Shown piece by piece: positions 1,283 through 14,226 of a stretch of 64,000 nt of DNA; position 1 is the first letter of the stretch, and each line of letters begins with the position of its first letter. The notes beneath the pieces were generated by a model that made no database searches, was not told the origin of the DNA, and saw only the letters and a program-made list of their open reading frames with translations. A program made the position numbers and the translations under genes. Origin of the DNA: Selaginella moellendorffii (Eukaryota; Plantae; Lycopodiophyta). Location of the stretch: contig NW_003314382.1 in the NCBI RefSeq assembly GCF_000143415.4, forward strand, positions 274,210-338,209, given 5' to 3'.

Positions 1283-1645
1283 CTAAGCTGCCACAAGAAC
1301 TGGCGCGCTCTTCTTCATGGGAGTTTTCTCCTCCTGGAAATCCTCCTGCCAAAACAATCACACTCAGCGAAGGAAGCGCAAGAACAACACACTCGAATCG
1401 ACTTACCGCGTTGTAGATCACTCTGATGTAAAGCGAACAGCTTGGGCACCTCGCAAACTCCTCGCCGATCTTGAGCTCCGCCTAGAGAGAGAGCAAGGGT
1501 AAGCAACTGGAGGCGAGGCGATCGAGCGGGCGCCGCGCCTTACCTTTGTGATCTGGAAGAGATCGCCGCAAGGGCAGGGATAGGTGTAAGCCGTGAGCGA
1601 TTCGTTCCACTCCATGTCCTCGATCTCTACATCGTCGTAAGACAT
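1283..1645 (-). CDS. DPH3: Diphthamide biosynthesis protein 3 (DPH3/KTI11, CSL zinc finger), 3 exons
   Basis: Spliced reading MSYDDVEIEDMEWNESLTAYTYPCPCGDLFQITK|AELKIGEEFARCPSCSLYIRVIYNA|EDFQEEKTPMKKSAPVLVAA*. CPCG and CPSCSL motifs; GT-AG introns. Confidence 0.95.
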
Positions 1646-1704
1646 TGCGCCAAGAACCCTAAACTTTGGGAGGAGCCCTAATTTTTGAAAAGGAGAGTGA
1701 GAAA
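1646..1704. promoter_or_regulatory. Very short head-to-head intergenic segment between DPH3 and IFT54 with telo-box-like motifs
   Basis: 59 bp between the two ATGs; contains AACCCTAAA and GCCCTAAT. Confidence 0.55.
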
Positions 1705-3585
1705 ATGGAGGCCTACTGGATGACGACGCAGCGCTTCCTCCAGCACGGGATCGATCCAATCGTGAAGCGTCCAAAGCTCACGGAGGCGCTGCTAAAGCGC
1801 CCGCCATTTCGATTCCTCCACGACATCGTCTCTGAGGTTTGCGGCATTGTCTTCTCGGTTTTTCTTTTTTCTAGTTCTTTCTTTGGAGCAATAGAATTTC
1901 TTGGTTTCCAGGTTACGCGACGCACCGGGTTTGCAGAGGGACTCTTCGCAGCCGACGAGCTTGCTCCATTGGAGCTTAAGGTACTTTCTTTTGTATTTGT
2001 TTCCTCGCATTGTTCTTTGCATTGAAACCTCGCATTGTTCTTTGTCAAAATTCTAGGACAAGGACGCTAAGTTGCGTTATCTCACGAAGATCATCAACTG
2101 CGTTGGCCTTACGCTAAATGCGAACGTTCCAGTGCGTCCAGCCAAGGTATACCTTCGTTTTTTCTTTCGTTTCTTCCATCTTGGCCTCGAGATTTCTACT
2201 TGGCTTTCGTACAGATTCTGGCTGGGCTGGAACCCGAGCAAACCAACGTCTTCTTGCAGGCCAGTGAGAACTGTTGATGCTTTGGAAAAATATACTAAAA
2301 ACAAAATTCTATGAACAGATGCTGGCTCAAGCAGCCACTACAGACAGCCAAAAAGCTGCAAAAGCTGTCTACCGCTGTTTAGCTGGAGACTTTATGCCTT
2401 CATCCGATCATAGGTACCTCCTTGTGCAATGGTTTAGCTTTTTGATCGCGAAGTTACTTGCATTGCTTTACAGTGGACTCATATCTCGTGAAAGCGCCTC
2501 CTCGAGTCAGTCTGTATCATCCGAGAAGCTAAGGAGGTCCATCTACAGTCCTTCGCCCGACGCGGCAGAGCTTTCCAACAAGACGAGGACCCAGGAAGTG
2601 GCCACACCACCACAGCCTGTGGATGCCACCAAGGTACAAGTTATCTATTCGCCTGGGGCTGTGAACGAGCAAGAAGAGGATGCTGTAGTGGAGAGCATGG
2701 CTTCCACAGAGTTGGATCTCAGCCACCAAGGTCAGCTTCTTCTTTTTGTGGTTTTCTAGTCGCTCAAGGAAGTGTTTGTTGCAGCTCCGATACAAACTGA
2801 GGTTCACGGACTTGGGCAAATTCCAGGTAGAACCAGCGGGGCTCAAACATGGATGATAAAGATGATAATGTCTGTGATTCTCCTTTTTTATTTTTCTAGC
2901 TCGATAGAAAAAGTGTCTGATATTGTTCCCGCAGATAAGAAAAGCGTCCAGGATGAGGAATTGTCTGAAGTGTATACGGAGCCAAGTGGAACCAAGGTCG
3001 AGACGGACAGCAAACGCGACGAGGTGAGAGGTATCTTTTCGTTTCTATTCCTTCGGTACCAAGTACTCGTGCGTAGAACAGTTGCAAAAGTTACGAGAAA
3101 GCATTCAAGCTCTGTGCCAAGCTATAAGTCCTCTCGGAAAGTTTATAGACTATCTACAGGTAATTCTTTGTCATTTCAATGTTACAAAGCTTCTCACACA
3201 GTTTTCCAGGAAGACGCGGAAGCTATGGCCAAGGAGTACCAGTTCTGGATTATAGAACAACAAAAGCATGGTGCGGATCTCGAAAGGGAGCGATTGTAAG
3301 TAGTGTTTTTTCGAGCTCCAGTGTCAGGCAACATTGTCACCTTGTCATAGGCGCACGGATGAAGTTATTCAAGCCGAGTCTAGGAAGATACTCGATCTGG
3401 AGGAGCAGATCAAACGCCAAGAACAGCTCAACAATATAGCGAAAGCTGAGGTGCGCTCTTTCATGCTTATCTTTTCTCTGTTCTCAAGAAACTTTTTTAT
3501 GCCACAGATACTCAAAAACGACGAAACCGCCATGGCGTTACTCCAAGCAGCTTCAACAGCCAGGAGGTTAACCAGAGAGACGTGA
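1705..3585 (+). CDS. IFT54: Intraflagellar transport protein 54 (TRAF3IP1/MIP-T3), multi-exon
   Basis: N-terminal domain KRPKLTEALLKRPPFRFLHDIVSE|VTRRTGF...YLTKIINCVG...ILAGLEPEQTNVFLQ|MLAQAA. C-terminal coiled coil LQKLRESIQALCQAISPLGKFIDYLQ|EDAEAMAKEYQFW...ILKNDE. Exons can be joined in frame using one GC-AG intron. Confidence 0.9.
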
Positions 3586-3667
3586 CAAAGTTGTTTTGTT
3601 ATAGTGAATCCATGCTTCTTTTTGTTTTTTGAGTTGACTACTGTTCTAGGCTACTACACAGTGGAAA

Positions 3668-4447
3668 ATGATCCGAAAAGGCTACGTCTCCGTGAGCGAT
3701 GGCCAGATTCACTATCGCCGAGCAGATCCGGAAGGGAATTCTCTGGGAAGTTTTCTTCTTCTCCACCAGCATCCAAGCTCATCAAAGATGTGGGAGCCCG
3801 TCATGCCATTGCTGGCAAGTCGAGGATACCAAGCAGTGGCGATAGACATACCAGGCTATGGCGAGTCCTTCCACTGCGAAGTCAGCCTCGAGACCATCGC
3901 AAGGTACGTCTTTGAAGCGATTCCCTTGCTAACTCTCTCGGAGCCAAGCATTGTCGTGGGTCATCACATTGGAGCAGCCGTAGCTATGCAGCTTGCGGTG
4001 GATTTCCCGGAGAGTGTGAAGAAGCTGGCACTGTGGGGGGTCCCGATTCTAGACGAGAGCGTGAAGAAGTTCGTGCCGGAAGCTCCAGACTTCGAGGACG
4101 AGGATCTCAAAGCCGTGATAAAGTTCTGGAAGATCAGGAACAAGGTGCCGGGAAAGCCAGGCTACAAAATGCCGCCTCACGCTCGAGCTTCGAGGCTGCT
4201 GGAGATGCTCCAGAGCAATCCCAGGGCGCGGGAGCTCCCTCTTCTTCTCAAAGTCGAGAGCTTGGTGGACAGAATCACGCAGCCGACGCTTTGCATGTGT
4301 GGCGACCACGAGCTTCTCAAAGATGCTACCATCAAAACGTCCAAAGAGTTTCGCAATGGAGAGCTTTGCTTCATCCAGGACGGTGGAATGGACGTCCAGA
4401 TCGAGCTCCCGGAAGAATTCGCGAGCGCTCTCGTCGGGTTTGCGTGA
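3668..4447 (+). CDS. Intronless alpha/beta-hydrolase-fold protein with non-canonical nucleophile elbow (GHHIG)
   Basis: 259-aa ORF: GQIHYR, LLLHQHPSSS, AIDIPGYGES, VVGHHIGAAVA, ITQPTLCMCG, PEEFASAL. Confidence 0.85.
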   Translation: MIRKGYVSVSDGQIHYRRADPEGNSLGSFLLLHQHPSSSKMWEPVMPLLASRGYQAVAIDIPGYGESFHCEVSLETIARYVFEAIPLLTLSEPSIVVGHHIGAAVAMQLAVDFPESVKKLALWGVPILDESVKKFVPEAPDFEDEDLKAVIKFWKIRNKVPGKPGYKMPPHARASRLLEMLQSNPRARELPLLLKVESLVDRITQPTLCMCGDHELLKDATIKTSKEFRNGELCFIQDGGMDVQIELPEEFASALVGFA

Positions 4448-4533
4448 AAGCTCTCGCTTTTCTTCTTTATGAATGAAAGAATCGTCTCTATGTACACACC
4501 GATCAATAGCTATGAACGAGCAGCCGCGTCGCT

Positions 4534-6606
4534 CTAGGTGGCGCAAGCGATCTCGACGTGATCGTCCTCTTTTCTCGAGACTTGCTCTCTCTGGATTGAT
4601 TTTCTATCCCTGTAGAGCGACTCGACTGCTTCCAGATACTCCACCACCACGGTGTCTGTCCATGGATTTCTAAACGGGGCGTTTTGGCCTGCGACCCAGC
4701 CAAGGTGGCCTCCTTTCGGTGTCACCACGAGCAAACAATTCCGATTCTCCTGGACAAGGAACTCGTTTGAAAAACATTGCTTTCCTTCCACGAGTAAAGC
4801 TCGTACCTTGATTGCTGCACGAGGAATGGCTCGGTTTGGAGCAATAGGATCGTTGGCAGCCTGGAATGGAAGAGTTTTACGAGATTGTCTAGAAACAAAA
4901 ATGAAAGGAACAAGACCTGGATGCAAAACAATGGGACTTTGACGTGCTCGATAGATTTCGAGCTGCTGGCATCGGCATAGTATTCATCCACTGACCTGTA
5001 GCCGAACGAAACTATGAAAGCCAAAACACACAGTTTAAGTTCAAGTTTTTACTAAGTACTCGTTACCTCGAGTTAATCCTTCGTCAAACTGTCTCACGGT
5101 TTTTGCATTGGCAGCCAGAGGAATGTTGTATTCACCACCGATCTCTTCAAACAAGGCCGCGTGCCTGCAATGCGAATTACAGACAACGACGAAGGAAACT
5201 CAACGCTCGTGTGACTTTACTTTCTAAAGATTGTCCGAAGGCTCGTTGCGAGGCTCTTGTCGTAGATGTTGTTGAAACCTTTGCGAAAGTCCTCGTCTGC
5301 AACCACAAGATCAAAAGGATTGCACAGGGACACTGCGCCACTGAGTATACAATTTTCTCCCTCCTGCCAATTACAAACCAAGTCGTGTAAACCAAGTCGG
5401 AAAGTTTGTGCTTGACGACACGAACCTGGCCGAGATAACGCACTAAAATGTTGGCCCCCAGCGACCATCCGACCGCATAGATCCTCGACTCGGGGAAACG
5501 ATACGCCACAAATCTCACGACTTGTCTCAAATCTTCTGTGAAAGAAGCTGAGTAGAACTACGAACGAAAGAGAAGAAGAATCAAATAACCACAAAGGCAT
5601 TTCGTTCCTCTTTGGTACCTTTGGAGACGTAACTGGACTGTCACTACAGCCACGGCTGTTGAATACCACCGTGTGCCATCCAATGTTTCGAACTCTTGAA
5701 ACCAAGTATTTCACGTACGAGTCATGGCTTCCTCCAGTTAGTCCTGGCTGAGGAGAGCAAAGAAGTCCGTGAGAACACGAAGAAATACGTAGCAAACTCT
5801 TGAAGAAAAAACATAGAACTCCAAGGAAAAAACTAACGAAGAACTACGTGATTCTCGAAGAAACAACGAAGAACTCTTATCGAGAACACGAAGAACGAGA
5901 AAAACTACTTGGCAAACTCTAGAAAGAACGAAGAACTACGTGGCTCTCGAAGAAACAACGAGAAAAACTACTTGGCAAGCTCGACGTGGTTCTCGAAGAA
6001 ACAACGAAGAACTCTTCTCGAGAACGATGGAAAAGAAAGAGCTCCAACCATGCAAAGCATGCAAGAAAAGAAGGAAAAAACTATAACTCTACGAGAGAGA
6101 AGTGTTCTTACCAGGAAGAGGAGAACTGGAGCATCGGATGGAAGCTTTTCTCTCCACTTGGCGGCGTCGCGATCCTCGCCCATGACCGGCCAGTCCAGCG
6201 CCACAGTGCCGCCATCGATCATCCGCAAGCACTCCCTCCGGAACCTCATCTTGGGCCGATGGCGGTATAATGCCGCGAAGACGGTCTCCACATGCCGGTT
6301 GCTGCCAATCACCGGGAACGCGCGGTACTTGCCCCTCTTCACCGTGGGCATGTTGTGGAGGATCTCGCTGCGCAGCTCCCCATCCCCGGAAACAATCTCC
6401 AGATCGTCCCTGGGCGCCATGAACAGCGTCCGCAATGGCTGCCGCCCTACGCCCCCGCGGCGCCCCCGCGAGAAAAGAACGATCGAAATCCGGGAGCCAA
6501 GGAAGGAATCCGCGGAGGAATGGAATGGTGGAGCCCTAGCGCTGCTTAGATTCCTGGGCAGCGAAGAACACGCCAGAGAAGCGAATCCCCGCGAATATGC
6601 CTCCAT
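4534..6606 (-). CDS. ABHD1/2/3-family alpha/beta hydrolase (embryogenesis-associated EMB8-like), multi-exon
   Basis: NRHVET, DGGTVALDW, PGLTGGS, VVFNSRGC, GWSLG (Ser), ANDP (Asp), GGHLGW (His); short GT-AG introns. Start taken as MEAYSRGF (transit-peptide-like). Confidence 0.9.
5765..6030. repeat. Degenerate minisatellite inside intron 1 (5748-6111) of the EMB8-like gene
   Basis: Recurring blocks CTCGAAGAAACAACG, AACGAAGAACT, AAAACTACTTGGCAA, GAGAACACGAAGAA. Confidence 0.75.
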
Positions 6607-6811
6607 CCTTCCTTCCCCTAGTGCTAGCACGCCTGGCATCAACCAAAACCAATGTACCGCGCGGCATTTATCCCCGCGGTCCATCGAGCCGCGCGGTAGT
6701 TAGTCCGTGACGCGCGGCAATTTTCTCGGACGGTAGACCGAGCCGGGCGGTATGTATTCGCGACGCGCGGCACATATAGGGTGTGACGCGCGGCATATAT
6801 CCTAGCATTAC

Positions 6812-8434
6812 ATGTGGTGGGAATGGGTCACAAGGATCAAGTCGTGCGGTAGCGATCTCCGCAAGCTCAGAGCCATCGATTCCCATCTCCGCGCGAGCCC
6901 CTTTGCGAGCGACTCCAGGATCTTGGGCCCTTTGATCGACGCGTATGGAAAATGTCGGTGTGTGGAGGATGCCCGCGCGGTGTTTGATCGGATTCCAGAG
7001 CCGGAGCCCAGCGCCAGGAAGTGTCTGTTTCAATCGTATGCGCTCAATGGGTATGCGCGAGAGGCGAAGAAGATGTTCGATTCGATGCCGGAGAGGAGTT
7101 CTTCTTGCTGGATCTCGCTGGTTCAAGCATTTACCAAGAGCGGGCATTCTAAGTTGGCGAAAGCCGCGTTTGAGAGGATGGCGTATCACAGCGTCATAGC
7201 TTCGACGGCAATGTTAGTGGCTTCCACTCAAATGGGAGACTTCCAAAACTCCAGGAGAGTTTTCGAGTTGATGCGGCTGAGAGACGTCGTGTGCTGGACT
7301 GCGCTGCTTCAAGCACATACCCGATGCGGGCATCTTGACGCCTCCTGCGAGTTCTTCGATCGAATGCCGCAGCGGAACTTCTTCTCCTGGACTGTGATGG
7401 TGAAGGCATTTGCACTAGCGAGACACATCGAACACGCGAAATCGTTCTTCGATCAAATGCCGGAGCGAGATCTCATGTGCTGGAACGTCCTACTGCTCGC
7501 ATTTGCCGAGCGGCGGCACCTTGAAGAAGCTCGCGAGATGTTCCAGCGGCTTCCACGCACTGATCTCGTCTCCTGGAACTGCCTCATCCAAGCCCTTGTC
7601 GAGTCGGGGAACCGAGCCGAGGCCCGCCACCTTTTCGACACACTCCCAGAGCACAACGTCGTCTCGTATAGCCTCCTCGTCCTGGCCCATGCACACGCAA
7701 AGGAACTCGACCAGGCCAAGGTGGTCTTCGACGCTATGCCCGAGAAGGACGTGGTTGCCAAGACGGCCATGGTACAGGCCTATGCCAAGCAAGGCCAAAT
7801 GCTGCAAGCCACGGAAGTCTTCCACACCATCCCGGTTCGCGACCGCGATGACAAATGCTCCACGACGATGGTGGTGGCGTACGCCGAGAACGGGCAGCTC
7901 CAAGAAGCCCAGGCGGTGTTTGACGAGAGCCCCCAATCGCCCAACGTGATCGGCTGGACAGCGCTGATAGCCGGGTATGCCCAAGTCGGGCATATCGACA
8001 AGGCCGTGAATCTCTTCCGGGCTATGGAGCTCGACGGCCAGGACCCCGACGAGTTTGCTCTGTCCGCCATCCTGGCCGCGTGTAGCCGAGGTGGGAAGGT
8101 CCGAGAGAGCCTCGAGAACTTCTGGTCCATGAATTATGATCGAGGGATGGAGCCGGCGCTGGAGCACTACAAGTGCATGGTGGATGTTTTAGCTCGGTCC
8201 GGGCAGCTGCGAGAGGCCGAGGATCTCATCCAGAGCATGCCAGTTCTTCCGGATCATATCACCTGGAAGACGCTCCTGGGTGGCTGCTCGACTCACGGGG
8301 ATTTGTCCCGCGGAGAGAAAGCCGCCACTGAGGTGCTTGAGCTCAACCAGAAGAAGGCCGGGACGTACGTCCTGCTCTCCAACATGCTAGCGATCAAGGA
8401 GCGGCAGCAGCGGCATCTGGAGATCATGGCATGA
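6812..8434 (+). CDS. PLS-class pentatricopeptide repeat protein with E-type C-terminus, no DYW
   Basis: 540-aa intronless ORF; repeated FDxMPERDVVxW motifs; ILAACSRGG...HYKCMVDVLARSGQL...W+TLLGGC...YVLLSN. Confidence 0.92.
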   Translation: MWWEWVTRIKSCGSDLRKLRAIDSHLRASPFASDSRILGPLIDAYGKCRCVEDARAVFDRIPEPEPSARKCLFQSYALNGYAREAKKMFDSMPERSSSCWISLVQAFTKSGHSKLAKAAFERMAYHSVIASTAMLVASTQMGDFQNSRRVFELMRLRDVVCWTALLQAHTRCGHLDASCEFFDRMPQRNFFSWTVMVKAFALARHIEHAKSFFDQMPERDLMCWNVLLLAFAERRHLEEAREMFQRLPRTDLVSWNCLIQALVESGNRAEARHLFDTLPEHNVVSYSLLVLAHAHAKELDQAKVVFDAMPEKDVVAKTAMVQAYAKQGQMLQATEVFHTIPVRDRDDKCSTTMVVAYAENGQLQEAQAVFDESPQSPNVIGWTALIAGYAQVGHIDKAVNLFRAMELDGQDPDEFALSAILAACSRGGKVRESLENFWSMNYDRGMEPALEHYKCMVDVLARSGQLREAEDLIQSMPVLPDHITWKTLLGGCSTHGDLSRGEKAATEVLELNQKKAGTYVLLSNMLAIKERQQRHLEIMA

Positions 8435-8932
8435 CAGACGCTCTTAAAAGTCCTGGCATTGGTACGAGAGGATGTTCAGATGCTCGGACTTTCAGCCAAG
8501 GATAAGATGTCCTGACCTCCTTCACGAGCTTGGAGCAGACTCCTCCGTCCACAGAGTAAAATCTTGACTCTTGGAAGCGACGAGAAAGGCACGTCTCTTC
8601 AGGCGCCTGGAACTACTTTCGTGGCGTTGCTCAGCTGCCAGAGCACTAGTAGAGAGGACTACCCCAGCACTTTGTCAAACGATTCGGGGCTTGGACCTTG
8701 CTGACGTAGAACGAGGAGATGACGCTGCAAAGCAGTGCAGCCGATCATTGTAGAGAACGAAACCAGCTCAAAAGACTCACACGGAGCACCTTATCCTTTG
8801 CTGTCCCAGGCCCGAGAACGTCACCAGTGATTGGACAGGGGCCACGAAAACAAAGTGCCTGAAGAACGACAGAGCCGGACGAAGTTAAAGTGGAAGAAAT
8901 CACAAGCACGGTTGAGCCACCATACCATACTG

Positions 8933-9893
8933 TCACTCTTTGAGCTCCCAGCCTCTTACATTGTCCCCGGGGTCGTAGTTCGTGTAGAGCTTAAACTCGT
9001 TCCCGAGCTTGTGCTTGTGAGCCGGCCTGAAGCCGCACGGCTGTACTCCCAGGAGGAAGAAAGCCCGTTCTTGCTGCACCGATCCTGAGCACCCAAATAC
9101 ACCGAATGAGCCCAGGACGCGAGTACACGAAAAGCAAAAGTCCCATCTCATGGGGGTGACGAAGCTTGCATCAAACCTGTCAACAAGAGGACTGGACTTT
9201 TCTGATGGTCCTCGGACAGGAACTGCACTGCCCGGGTGGTCTTCTCAAGGCACTCCTCGCTCTGCAAAAGAAAAAGGTTAAAGAGCAACAACGTTGAGGT
9301 GATGGTCACTCTAGCTCCATCCATTTCTGTCTCTTTTTCTCTCTCTCTCTCGCTTTTTCTTACAAGGTAGGGAGGATCAGCAGCGACGACGTAGAAACGG
9401 TGCTCGAAATGTCTAGGCAAATCCTCCGGATGGTTGTAGTCGTAGTAAGTGAAGTCACTGCCATGACGAGCGAAACGACGATCGTATTCGAAGAGATGCG
9501 CTCTAATGCCTGGATAGATCTTCTGCGCACATCGATCCAGCACAGCTGAGCGTAGAAAAACACAAAAGAGAACAAAAGAACAACAAGGAAAAAACAAACA
9601 GAGCGTTTCAATCTCCTCGAACTTCGTACCTTGAGCATCGTATAGAGCGACGGGCATGCGATGCACGCTACCGAGCGCTCTGGCGCATCGCCAATCACCC
9701 TAACGACCTCCTCGGCCACGATCCGAGCGGTAAAATCATCGTACCAGAACTGGCTCAAGCCCCAATCCTCGCCAACGCTACCCTCGCCGCCGTCGCCAGC
9801 ACCGCCGCAATCCCTCTCCCGCATGAAATCCCGCAAAGCCTCCAGCGCGTGGGCGCTGAGCGCCGGAGGAGAATCGTCCTCCACCCCCGCCAT
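8933..9893 (-). CDS. EEF1AKMT1: eEF1A lysine methyltransferase 1 (N6AMT2/Efm5 family), multi-exon
   Basis: LSAHALEALRDF, EDWGLSQFWYD, IACPSLY, LFEYDRRF, YDYNHP, ADPPYL|SEECL, LLLTG, FRPAHKHKLGNEFKLYTNY. Confidence 0.92.
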
Positions 9894-10200
9894 AAACCCT
9901 AAAATGCCCCACGCTTAGAGAATATTCCCCAATTTAAAATGGCCAGCCCTAACCCTAACCGCGGAGTTTTTATCGCATTTAGGTGGGGGTCGGCTGACGT
10001 GGACGAGGCAAGAACAACGAAGAGGGATCTCCATTCCTTCCAGGAAGAAAGACTTCTTCTTCTCTATCTCTCTCTCTCTCTCTCTCTCTCGCTCGCTCTC
10101 GCTCGCAGCTCCAATCTTCCTCCCCAATTACAATTCCGCGAGGAGGAGCAATGATCTCATAGATTTCCCCTCACTTCCTCTCTCGCGAGTCGCGCCTACC
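9894..10200. promoter_or_regulatory. Divergent promoter between EEF1AKMT1 and MAPKK with telo-boxes and a CT microsatellite
   Basis: AAACCCTAA at ~9894, CCCTAACCCTAACC at ~9947, TGACGTGG at ~9995, (CT)n at ~10068-10090. Confidence 0.55.
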
Positions 10201-11262
10201 ATGCCGGTGAAGAAGAGCCTCCGCCCAAGTCTCAAGCTCCCCATCCCAGCGCGCGACGCCGGCTTCGCCAAGCCTCCACTCCCACTCCCACTGCCGCAGC
10301 AATCCAATCCTCTCGGCAGCGCCACCAGCAGGGACGTCCTCCTCGAGGATCTGGAGCGCCTGGAGATCCTCGGCCATGGCAGCGGCGGCAAGGTCTACAA
10401 GGCGCGCCACCGCATCACCGGCACCCTCTACGCGCTCAAGATCATCCAGGAGAAGCACGACCCGGCGGTGCGCAAGCTCATCGTCCGCGAGATCGAGATC
10501 ACGCGCCGCTTCTCCGCCAGATCCCCCTACGTGGTCCAGTGCTACGGCGTCTTCGAGCGCGGCGGCGAGATCTCGCTGGTGCTCGAGTTCATGGACGGAG
10601 GTACGCTCGCCAACGTCCTGGCCGCCCGCAAGACCATCGACGAGAGGTTCCTGGCGAGAGTGACGCGCCAGGCGCTCAAGGGTCTCATGTACCTCCACGC
10701 CAACAAGATCGTCCACCGCGACATCAAGCCCTCCAATCTGCTGCTCAACCGGAAGAACGAGGTGAAGATCGCGGACTTTGGAGTGAGCACCCAGCTCGCG
10801 CACACTCTCGCCCAGTGCAACTCCTTCGTTGGAACCTGCGCCTACATGAGCCCCGAGAGATTCGACCCGGATGGTCACGGCGGCCACTACGACTCCTCCG
10901 CGGATATCTGGAGCCTCGGCCTCACGCTGCTCGAGTGCGCCATTGGCTACTTCCCCTGCGTCGCCCCCGGCCAGAAGCCCGACTGGCCGACGCTCGTCTG
11001 GGCGATTTGCCTCGGGGATCCTCCCTCGCCACCCCCGGACGCGTCGCCGGAGTTCAAGAGCTTCATCCGGAGCTGCCTCCAGAAGAATTCCTCGCAGCGC
11101 CCGTCCGCCGCCAGGCTGCTCCACCACCCTTTCCTGCTCAAGTCGGACGACGAGGTCGCGCAGCTCCGGCCCCTCATCAGCTCCTTGAGGCTGGTCTCGT
11201 CGTCCTCGACTTCGTCTTCGCAGCCCCTGGGTGTTCCTGCTCGGTTCGGCCACCCGAAGTGA
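10201..11262 (+). CDS. MAP kinase kinase, group D (MKK7/MKK9-like), intronless
   Basis: N-terminal docking-like KKSLRPSLKL; GHGSGGKVYK, HRDIKPSNLL, DFGVS; activation loop T-X5-S (TLAQCNS); GTCAYMSPERFD typical of group D. Confidence 0.92.
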   Translation: MPVKKSLRPSLKLPIPARDAGFAKPPLPLPLPQQSNPLGSATSRDVLLEDLERLEILGHGSGGKVYKARHRITGTLYALKIIQEKHDPAVRKLIVREIEITRRFSARSPYVVQCYGVFERGGEISLVLEFMDGGTLANVLAARKTIDERFLARVTRQALKGLMYLHANKIVHRDIKPSNLLLNRKNEVKIADFGVSTQLAHTLAQCNSFVGTCAYMSPERFDPDGHGGHYDSSADIWSLGLTLLECAIGYFPCVAPGQKPDWPTLVWAICLGDPPSPPPDASPEFKSFIRSCLQKNSSQRPSAARLLHHPFLLKSDDEVAQLRPLISSLRLVSSSSTSSSQPLGVPARFGHPK

Positions 11263-11378
11263 ATAAAAATCCAACCTTTACTGGTCTCGCTGGTCCTGCC
11301 GTCTCGATCCAGTATAGGAGCACTCGTCCGGATCATAACTAGCTGATAACGCTCTCGTACGTAGCTATCCATCCATCC

Positions 11379-14226
11379 TCAGTTGCTGTGTTGATCAGAG
11401 GTGGGAGTAGTTGCGCTGGATCTTTCTGGCGAGCATACCCCCTGCTGCTGCTCCGGCTCTGCGTTGTCTGACCGGGGAGTTGCGACGAGATCTTTCCCGC
11501 TTCTGCGACCAAACAACGAGTGCCCGATATGGGACGCTGTCCTCTCGGCCTGCTTCACCACACCCCTGGCCCTGTCCCTTATTCTCATTGATCGCCGGCC
11601 GGGGGAGACCTCCTGCGATTCAGCGTCGTCCAGCCCGTCACTGGCTCGCATTGAATCCTCTGCCAGCTTTGGTGTTGGAACCTGACTGTTGGTGCCAGTT
11701 TGGACGCCAGAAGGGGTGGGAGTCAAGTCGGTTCTCGCGTCGCTTGGTTTAGCAGCGGCCTTATCTGGTAAAGACAATGCTGGCGTCGAATCTTCCGGAG
11801 CTGGAGCTGGAGAAGTCACAGCAGAGTCCGTGTCGATAACTGTTCGCAGCTTCATCTGTCCTCCTTTCTCGCTGATGCTAACCAGCTCTCCGGATACGAG
11901 CTTTTTATCTCGGGGTCCACGGTGGCTCCACTTCCAGAACCTCGCCTTCCCCCCGGGTTGGCCGGATTTGTCACCCTCGCTGTCACTAGATTCGGACTCT
12001 CGCTCGAGGCTGCCACTGAAGAGAGTATTGTCTGGCAACTCAACATCTTCATCGAGCTTCCTTCCTTTTCTACCACGCCACTTCTTTTGCACTGCCTTTC
12101 CGGGCCTCATTATAGAAAATATTCCCGAGGCACTCACGCCAGTGTCAATGATTTCGTAATGATCCAAGCCAAGTGAATCAGGTAAAGATTCATCTCCATC
12201 TGTAGTCAGCCTTGTACTAGGCGATACCTCCTGCAGCAAGGTATCAACATCATGAATAAAACCACCACTATCATCGTCATCACCACAGAATTTACCACTT
12301 CGAGTTGACAATCGGGTGCTTCCTCAACCGTAATTGCGAAAGTGATGCGCCCAGTTTTTACGCCTTTAAGGGGCAAGCAAACTTCATGCCGATCGCCGCC
12401 TCTAAACTTCGCCAGTAACACGTCGCAATACCTGTTCATAAAGTAGCGCCATCAATCACACAAGCGTCTCATAATCCCAAACTAGAAATGCACAAACCCG
12501 AGATTGTCGTCCCGAAAGAGATCTTTGTCCCTCACGTGAAACATCATACGGTTTTGGATCTCCCAGCTTCTTATGGGTAAACGAAATACTTCTCTCCACT
12601 TGGGATTGAGAGTCTTCCACTTTATTGACGTTTTAAAACGATTAGTGTTCAGTACTCCTTTCACGAAAGGATCCGCCAATCCTGAACGAAAAGCAAAAAG
12701 CAAAGAAAAGGTTCAGAAATAAAATCCATGAATATTAGCTTACCATTGACATCAGCCGGTTTTAATTGTGTTGCTTCAAGGATTTCAACTACAGCAACAG
12801 CAACCGGAGGCGCGGACTCCGCTGCAAACAAGGCGATCATAAGCCTATCACACAGCTTGAATGAGGTAATTACCACTTGGAAGAGTTGCGTACTCGGATG
12901 TTGCCCAACTATTTGCAATCTTTTCGACATTTATCACCAGCATGTTTGGCTATAAAAACCAATGATCATCAAAATCAAACTCGTGCATAACCTTCTAACC
13001 TTCACGACCGAGTCCTCTAGCGCATCCATCAGCATCGTGTCCTATTCAGAACAAAGAAAAAAGCAAAAAGCTTATCACAAACAAAACAAAAGAGTGACAG
13101 ATTATCTACCAGCCAGCTTGCGATTCCAGGAAGCTCAGCCATGTCCATCCCATACGTCGAGAGCGGCCGTGCTTCGATCTGGACGTAAGGCGCACTCTCG
13201 AAGCTGATCCGGAGACGACTAACAAATGGCCATCCCCCATGAAACCTCACTCCAAGACGAACCTTCTCAAAACAAAACAAAAGTTTTCTACAAACATTCA
13301 GCCAAAAGCACCAGACAAATACCTTTCCTTCAATATGTAGCTTCGAGATATGTAACTTTGTCCAGAGCCCTCCAAGGCGCTTTCTCAGCTGAACAGAGAG
13401 CACCGCGCTCATATCATCAGCAGCCACAAATTCCATAATAGTTTCAAAGACCTGAAAGAAATACATGAAAGTTTAGGAGAAAGAAGTCTAAAAACTCGCA
13501 AGAAACATTACCACGTCGTCATCCGTCCCAGAAGGATCCAGAGCTCGCATGCCCGCAAACATGGGTGGATTTCTTCCCAGAGCAAAGCTTTGCAGTACAC
13601 CATCTTGCTGCCAGTAGAGTGGAGAAAAACGTGACCTCCTCCGAAAAAATTCAACACCAAACGAAGAACATACATACCACTGTCCAGGGCTTGTACTTGG
13701 CCAGGAAAAACGGCATGAGAGGAGCTAGAAAATCCTGAGACGCAAACTTCTCCAGGAAAACTGGCCATGCTTTTGCGACAGTCTCGTTGAGCCACCGGAC
13801 ACTCTCAAAGTCTGATAACAACTGCAGCACGCTGCTGAGCTCCAATCCGACAACACTGGATCCACCATCAATCAGCACATACCTGTTTTTGAAACGCGTG
13901 CTTTCGCTCCTCGTGGCGAATCCGCCGGAGCCACTTCTCGCGATGGCGTCTCTCAATCTAGAAATCCAAAATTCTATCTTAGAAAAAACAATTCCAAGAG
14001 CGACCAGCCAGCCACTTACGTGAAAGAGAAAGATGAAGCCAACGACAGGGACGATCGCGTAATTTATCCCCAGGAGCGAAAGAATCCACACCACAACGAG
14101 GACCAATGCGGCGTGGAGAATGAAAGGCCAATGGAGCAGCCAATGGAAAACCTGATCCATCCTCGCGCCGTCGCCGCTGCTACTATCGCCGCCGCGCGCC
14201 TCGGATTCAGCTCCTCGATCGCCCAT
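11379..14226 (-). CDS. N-terminal TM + SMP + C2 domain protein (At1g53590/NTMC2 type 6-like), multi-exon
   Basis: TM segment; SDFESVRWLN, FLAKYKPWT, MEFVAADDMSAVL, DMAELPGIASWL (SMP); VEILEATQLKPADVNG|LADPFVKG...KTLNPKW...VRDKDLFRDDNLG (C2); low-complexity tail. Start could alternatively be 14160 or 14340. Confidence 0.88.

Follow-up and report, generated by a model that had tools for sequence, protein, structure and literature searches.

Among enzymes with the alpha/beta-hydrolase fold, those that use an aspartate as nucleophile, namely Cif-like 1 (7jqx), the fluoroacetate and haloalkane dehalogenases, Alr0039 (3qyj) and soluble epoxide hydrolase, are the best PDB sequence matches of P0001, a protein encoded in a stretch of 64,000 nucleotides from the lycophyte Selaginella moellendorffii (contig NW_003314382.1; hereafter the window, in whose numbering all positions are given). 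P0001 and these enzymes have in common the fold with a helical cap, an N-terminal xHYxxxG hairpin, the histidine of the oxyanion motif, the G-H-x-x-G frame of the nucleophile elbow and a D-E-x-P stretch after the beta8 loop. They differ in that the Asp nucleophile is a His in P0001, HGxP is HQxP, and the catalytic His is a Met, at a position that is variable across the family to which P0001 belongs; the identity is about 20-25%. Judged by these residues, the covalent alkyl-enzyme chemistry of the Asp-nucleophile enzymes is not possible as such in P0001. Our analysis suggests, with a probability of about 0.6, that P0001 is encoded by a functional, transcribed nuclear gene which goes back to an ancient single acquisition from bacteria, has descended vertically since, and has a His-carboxylate active site. 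The gene and its motifs are the following:

3668..4447, plus strand: complete intronless coding sequence (CDS) of the His-elbow alpha/beta-hydrolase-fold protein P0001; a single uninterrupted open reading frame (ORF) from ATG to TGA, 259 amino acids (aa) plus stop.
3764..3775, plus strand: oxyanion-loop motif H33-Q34-H35-P36 (HQxP replacing HGxP), after model strand 27-32.
3959..3973, plus strand: nucleophile elbow G98-H99-H100-I101-G102 with His as the nucleophile residue; strand-turn-helix in the model, aligned to 3qyj and 7jqx.
4301..4312, plus strand: beta7-loop acid position G212-D213-H214-E215, after strand 207-212; E215 stands in the D/E column of the family.
4379..4405, plus strand: beta8 loop D238-G-G-M241-D242-V-Q-I245-E246, placed by the profile alignment to Cif-like 1, the column counts and the streptophyte table.

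[quoted passage not shown] Three Pfam models exceed their cut-offs (Abhydrolase_1, 54.5 bits against 25.8; Abhydrolase_6, 36.7 against 26.3; Hydrolase_4, 31.6 against 27), and the AlphaFold2 model, built on a family alignment of 97 sequences, has a mean predicted local distance difference test score (pLDDT) of 91.9 and a predicted template modelling score (pTM) of 0.91. In this model, a strand (94-99), residue 100 and a helix (101-112) form the geometry of a nucleophile elbow, HQHP follows beta3, GDHE follows beta7, and the DGGMD loop follows beta8 (231-236). Foldseek retrieved generic members of the fold only, with template modelling (TM) scores of 0.75-0.84 and 16-25% identity to haloperoxidases, aryl esterases, dehalogenases and epoxide hydrolases.

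In both the sequence and the 97-member profile alignments, H100 is aligned with the Asp nucleophile of solved enzymes (GHDRGA, GRDIG), and in the profile M241, within the family stretch 'gvdvade', is aligned with the catalytic His of 'GHWLPDE' in Cif-like 1. A Ser/Cys/Asp-His-acid triad is thus not found: the elbow residue is His100, the beta8 His position is occupied by Met241, and the acid Glu215 alone is present. No solved structure with a His elbow was retrieved from PDB by the sequence, by the 97-member profile or by Foldseek. In the NCBIfam scan no model reached its cut-off and the matches below it were generic, the best being haloalkane dehalogenase models (51.4 bits against a cut-off of 241). 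Membership among the epoxide hydrolases and dehalogenases was rejected on the missing Asp of G-x-D-x-G, the missing HGxP, the missing beta8 His and this sub-threshold score; membership in the KAI2/D14/MES group was rejected since P0001 has no elbow Ser and no such protein was among the best PDB sequence or fold matches. The original prediction, made from the letters of the window, had pointed to HQHP, to GHHIG and to a C-terminal loop without the catalytic His, and all of these are present in the 259-aa ORF (HQHPSSS at residues 33-39, GHHIGA at residues 98-103, and IQDGGMDVQIELPEEF at residues 236-251). The alignments bear out the rewired site that it described, with His at the elbow, HQ for HG and Met241 at the catalytic-His position; the elbow His and the loop Asp (D242), which it supposed to have exchanged roles, are both kept.

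This arrangement is not peculiar to the plant protein. A word-index search with the single sequence found just three distant relatives and suggested an orphan, a status that was overturned by an exhaustive HMMER search over the 50%-identity clusters of a collection that includes NCBI nr, UniRef and EukProt (8999 matches at E<=1e-3, 614 at E<=1e-10 and 16 at E<=1e-30; best identity 44%). Motifs were counted over 192 matched domains of the best 150 proteins and columns over the 97-member alignment. The nucleophile position is His in 155 of the 192 domains, with the consensus G-H-H-T-G-A; the oxyanion motif is H-Q in 92 of them, and the beta8 loop, which has no His, reads G-x-x-x-D-V-x-D-E-x-P. 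Conservation is high at H33 (95/97), Q34 (83/97), H100 (89/97) and D/E215 (95/97), and also extends to D/E245 (75/97), to a cap His or Tyr at 188 (76/97) and to D242 (42/97). On these counts the hallmarks of the clade are LLHQxPSS, G-H-H-T-G-A, the absence of a beta8 His, and carboxylates at D/E215, D242 and D245-E246. P0001 has the HQxPSS and GHHxGA motifs, no beta8 His and an acid at 215, and keeps H33, Q34, H99, H100, E215, D242 and E246. Because the odd site is the conserved signature of a populous family, it does not result from decay in this plant, and loss of the active site by lineage-specific decay was ruled out by the family-wide His elbow.

The exhaustive search and the domain alignment also uphold the suggestion of the original prediction that the protein belongs to an uncharacterised microbial family and not to the plant MES, KAI2 or epoxide hydrolase (EH) families; the family is overwhelmingly microbial. 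Its members carry generic automatic names in public databases. A literature search found no paper on the HQ/GHHTGA motif or on a His elbow in this fold, nor anything relevant on horizontal gene transfer in Selaginella or streptophytes; one paper on such transfer (PMC11131428) does not mention the P0001 gene.

Several architectures occur among the bacterial members. Some are fused to 3-hydroxyacyl-CoA dehydrogenase (3HCDH), glyoxalase or OsmC/Ohr domains. Many consist of two domains in tandem, about 565 aa in all (e.g., P0021, P0032, P0038, P0043, P0046 and P0053), and in several of these the His is kept at the elbow of one domain and the elbow of the other is degenerate (Gly or Ala), like a built-in pseudo-dimer; on one metagenomic contig (L019:1644-6211), multi-domain copies of 786 and 736 aa adjoin each other. 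The bacterial genes stand in catabolic and redox clusters, beside genes for UbiD decarboxylases, FAD monooxygenases, molybdenum hydroxylases, luciferase-like monooxygenases, amidohydrolase_2 enzymes, methyltransferases, solute-binding proteins and 3HCDH. In a Variovorax operon (L003/L004/L005:3937-7682), genes for an octopine-dehydrogenase-like protein, a 3-hydroxyacyl-CoA-dehydrogenase-like protein, the His-elbow hydrolase and a zinc-alcohol-dehydrogenase-like protein follow one another with overlapping stops and starts, and in P0197 the hydrolase fold is fused to 3HCDH domains. Taken together, the operon and the fusion make a functional link with 3HCDH possible for that subfamily.

The nearest relatives of P0001 are proteins of streptophyte algae, with 36-44% identity. 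They come from Mesotaenium endlicherianum (44%), Klebsormidium subtile and K. nitens (KFL_001610060), Spirogloea muscicola (two genes) and Closterium (four strains), while the nearest bacterial proteins, from Dehalococcoidia/Chloroflexota and Actinomycetota (Cryobacterium arcticum, Pseudonocardia), reach 37-39%. The stretches KKLxLWGVPIL, APD[FY] and QPTLCM.GD.E are specific to streptophytes and common to P0001 and the algae, and column 215 is E in every full-length streptophyte member compared. The algal orthologues are genuine nuclear genes: those of K. nitens and Closterium NIES-65 have three introns each and lie on contigs of 164 kb and 1 Mb. Zygnematophyte orthologues (P0006, P0007, P0008, P0225 and P0227) are extended at the C-terminus by a low-complexity stretch of about 100 aa with a conserved basic motif at its end ([KR]xx[FL]xx[FL]x[KR]GK-like), a stretch found in neither the plant, Klebsormidium nor bacterial proteins.

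Among the best matches with an organism name or a place in the tree, the only eukaryotes are streptophytes (most of the 150 listed matches are without organism name). There is no other land-plant protein among the 16 matches at E<=1e-30, and a search over 90% clusters gave no match between 36% and 100% identity to P0001. Given the make-up of the collection, the annotated bryophyte, fern and seed-plant proteomes in it appear to be without the gene; its coverage of taxa known only from transcriptomes is incomplete.

Under LG+C20 PMSF, and with a second bacterial subfamily as root, a maximum-likelihood tree of 60 rows gave the topology (Klebsormidium,(P0001,(Spirogloea, Mesotaenium, Closterium and three transcript-derived proteins))), which is the accepted species order. 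P0001 is sister to all sampled Zygnematophyceae with a support of 99/95, and the streptophyte group is nested among bacterial rows of Actinomycetota and Chloroflexota type, including Pseudonocardia, Cryobacterium and Dehalococcoidia; the root and the deeper nodes are moderately supported (82-89). Forcing P0001 into either of the two neighbouring bacterial clades costs 11.4 and 18.0 log-likelihood units, and approximately unbiased (AU) tests reject both placements (P-value = 0.029 and 0.0099). At 1.05, the branch of P0001 since the split is no outlier among those of the algal orthologues (0.83-1.81), which argues against pseudogene-like drift.

These results bear on the origin of the gene. A recent direct transfer from a bacterium to the lycophyte would fit the compact intronless gene, the overwhelmingly bacterial family and the absence of the gene from every other land plant in the collection. 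However, P0001 is firmly sister to the zygnematophyte proteins and shares the streptophyte-specific stretches with the algae, the best bacterial identity (about 39%) does not exceed the algal one (44%), and both nearest bacterial placements are rejected; we therefore disfavour this explanation as very improbable. Any bacterial transfer is ancient and predates the split of Zygnematophyceae and land plants and probably that of Klebsormidium too. The homology search and phylogeny that the original prediction had called for thus produced a streptophyte clade nested among bacteria, and its proposal that this plant had acquired the gene horizontally falls with the algal orthologues in species order and the AU tests; intronlessness and tight spacing, which it had taken as signs of such an event, are not evidence of recent transfer. 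It had also named orthologues across green algae and land plants in species order as a finding that would speak against its proposal. The algal part of this holds for four streptophyte genera, and the land-plant part does not, the other annotated land plants of the collection appearing to be without the gene.

Transcription was assessed with RNA contigs from four runs of four studies, placed on window positions 1600-7500. Since eight GT..AG introns of the upstream gene and seven CT..AC introns of the downstream gene are spliced out in the contigs, these derive from RNA. The features concerned are:

3506..3585, plus strand: final coding exon of the upstream IFT54/MIP-T3 gene, with its stop codon, from RNA joints, the ORF and a Pfam match (PF10243) at exon 1666-1833.
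4534..4748, minus strand: final coding exon of the convergent downstream gene, with its stop codon, from ORF 4534..4926(-) and a CT..AC joint at 4748/4806.
3506..4748, no strand assigned: stretch unbroken in spliced RNA contigs, comprising the last IFT54 exon, the CDS in full and the downstream gene's 3' end; it is bounded by the end of GT..AG joints at 3506 and the start of CT..AC joints at 4748.

The stretch is covered by X1 record 2 (3506-4748), X3 record 5 (3506-4740), X4 record 9 (3506-4650) and X7 records 14 and 15. There is no splice joint inside the ORF within 3506-4748, and the gene is therefore transcribed and, as the original prediction had read it, intronless. The remaining structural points made there hold as well: the upstream gene is IFT54 by its Pfam match; the IFT54 stop ends at 3585, 82 bp before the start of the CDS, and the stop of the minus-strand gene (4534-4536) lies 86 bp from its end; and, as the protein begins directly at beta1, flush with its bacterial homologues, there is no N-terminal extension and no evident targeting peptide. 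In run X7 a contig wholly within the ORF has a depth of 610, against 172 for the IFT54 contig, a weak hint of separate transcription. Run X3 carries the sole variant form seen, an allele (window 3899, 3901, 4339 and 4349) with GCA>ACG at codon 78 (A78T), TTT>CTT at codon 228 (F228L) and one or two silent changes, including codon 224. In the 82-bp spacer, linked changes at 3608, 3609 and 3614 were seen in three runs.

The upstream gene, IFT54/MIP-T3 (TRAF3IP1; window 1666-3585, plus strand), contains, according to the RNA contigs, at least eight GT..AG introns, all very short (50-75 nt), and the presence of this flagellar transport gene is consistent with a plant that has motile sperm; the short introns and IFT54 also fit Selaginella moellendorffii as the source. 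The convergent downstream gene (window 4534-6684, minus strand) has seven CT..AC introns, one of them of 364 nt, and one of its exons encodes a G-W-S-L-G elbow (YAVGWSLGANILVRYLG). From this motif, the neighbour of the His-elbow gene looks like a canonical Ser alpha/beta hydrolase; two ORF-level pieces of it had no Pfam match when the exons were searched singly and not as a joined spliced model. Farther on, at window 6200-11200, the guanine-cytosine (GC) content goes up from about 0.45 and reaches 0.60-0.67, and the GC skew is strongly negative around 9600-11400.

The reading that we prefer would start with one transfer from a soil-type bacterial donor to a streptophyte before the divergence of Zygnematophyceae and land plants, probably before that of Klebsormidiophyceae, followed by vertical inheritance with repeated loss on land; as far as the collection shows, this lycophyte lineage would be the sole land-plant survivor. 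As to the site, its mechanism is only inferred. Compared with canonical enzymes, the family would have lost the beta8-loop His, placed a His on the elbow, kept the beta7-loop acid (Glu215) and added carboxylates beside the old His position (Asp242 in P0001). From the known geometry of the fold, the elbow imidazole could reach the space normally held by the beta8-loop His, where H100 may pair by hydrogen bond with Glu215, Asp242 or both. The resulting His-carboxylate dyad would act, as general base or general acid, upon a small substrate under the helical cap, with the Gln34 side chain and the backbone NH of Ile101 as a putative anion hole. No acyl- or alkyl-enzyme intermediate would be formed, as in other lyases, decarboxylases and cofactor-free oxygenases of the alpha/beta fold, and such a site would be suited to water activation, decarboxylation, tautomerisation or cofactor-free oxygenation. 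The broader proposal that the whole HQ/GHHTGA clade represents a distinct catalytic class, in which the imidazole would have moved from the beta8 loop to the elbow and would act either as a base with a carboxylate or as a His nucleophile, is put forward tentatively, as a suggestion that we ourselves would not expect to hold.

Several results weigh against the preferred reading, with regard both to descent and transcription and to the site. The position of Klebsormidium outside the plant and Zygnematophyceae has only moderate support (89/78), and the eukaryotic branches are long enough that long-branch attraction may play some part. Intron positions differ between Klebsormidium and Closterium, and the introns therefore lend no independent support to a single origin. 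The RNA contigs fuse the ORF with the last IFT54 exons, and in one run also with the downstream gene; over spacers of 82 and 86 bp an assembler would merge overlapping untranslated regions (UTRs), and the fusion shows neither a bicistronic RNA nor a separate transcription start for the ORF. About a dozen bacterial neighbourhoods were surveyed and have no constant partner gene. P0001 itself departs from the family at conserved sites, with Arg for the cap His188, Ile for Asp245 and Ser for Arg175. Furthermore, the elbow residue in the sister algal clade is Gln (Mesotaenium, Spirogloea and the transcript-derived members) or Glu (Closterium), and column 188 there is Ser, Thr or Ile (Ile in Spirogloea). 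With such elbows in the sister algae, a His general base may be dispensable in streptophytes, and the His chemistry may have been relaxed or replaced in them.

The moderate Klebsormidium node and the unshared intron positions, together with the patchy distribution in land plants, where a single lineage has the gene, are what one would expect if a zygnematophyte-like alga had passed the gene to the lycophyte, or if bacteria had given it separately to Klebsormidium and to the common ancestor of Zygnematophyceae and the plant. The first of these conflicts with the position of P0001 as sister to the sampled Zygnematophyceae and not inside them, and vertical descent with losses yields the same tree without an extra transfer, which leaves both improbable in our estimation. 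The three changed family positions, the merging of the ORF with both neighbours in the RNA contigs, and the two amino-acid changes in the only allelic variant (A78T and F228L) would also suit a decaying relic, open by chance or transcribed only within the neighbouring UTRs. Such a relic is hard to reconcile with a 780-nt ORF open since the Zygnematophyceae split, a branch length comparable to those of the algal orthologues, a confident predicted fold with its core motifs, and a depth in X7 that is higher for the contig within the ORF than for that of the upstream gene; we give it hardly any credence.

The variation at the site has more force. If the protein does not catalyse, and the fold has been kept as a module that binds a ligand or a partner, with the elbow residue lining the pocket, then the change among His, Gln and Glu in streptophyte orthologues, the loss of the family cap His188 and Asp245 in P0001, and the lack of a canonical triad would be readily explained, and the basic end of the zygnematophyte C-terminal extension would suggest contacts with partners or membranes. 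On the other hand, the His elbow of the bacterial proteins is retained in P0001 and Klebsormidium together with Gln34, Glu215 and Asp242, and the bacterial members are found in catabolic and redox clusters and fused to enzymes (3HCDH, glyoxalase, OsmC). We regard a binding protein or pseudoenzyme as unlikely, though as a serious competitor to a catalytic His-carboxylate site.

Beyond this plant, it is the uncharacterised His-elbow clade that is of general interest, and the plant gene would be a relict member of it. If the clade is a catalytic class of its own, hundreds of bacterial clusters and a relict line of streptophyte algae and one lycophyte would run a type of reaction undescribed for this fold. 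Once defined, the chemistry of the clade would give one of the best-studied enzyme folds a further kind of active site, and automatic names that now mislead, such as 'pimeloyl-ACP methyl ester carboxylesterase' and 'haloalkane dehalogenase', could be set right. For the plant, the locus would represent a bacterial-type gene that was present in algal ancestors and was lost from all but one land-plant lineage in the collection; a gene that is intronless, bacterial-looking and found only in this plant need not be a recent transfer.

Among other systems of the superfamily, the cofactor-independent dioxygenases use a His-Asp dyad as base, with no nucleophile, which is the kind of mechanism proposed here for P0001. 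In the dioxygenases and in the hydroxynitrile lyases, which use the site for general-base chemistry without a covalent intermediate, the His stands on the beta8 loop and the elbow carries a Ser, whereas P0001 has its His on the elbow. Both (PMC10548524; PMC3444685) have the same fold as P0001, and no sequence relationship beyond the superfamily was seen. KAI2/D14, GID1 and MES belong to the superfamily as well, and a receptor-like role as in some of these would be one form of the binding-protein explanation; they have a Ser elbow and are widespread in land plants, neither of which is true of P0001, and none of them is among its nearest sequence or fold matches. P0001 also resembles, with 33-39% identity over the full length, the bacterial His-elbow proteins of Dehalococcoidia (GIW07623.1), Cryobacterium arcticum (WP_110125625.1) and Pseudonocardia (WP_237192735.1), which have no annotation beyond 'alpha/beta hydrolase', 'pimeloyl-ACP methyl ester carboxylesterase' or 'haloalkane dehalogenase'. 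Unlike them, P0001 has no cap His188 and no Asp245 and is encoded by a nuclear gene of a streptophyte clade; in common with them, it has HQxPSS, GHHxGA, D/E215 and D242..E246.

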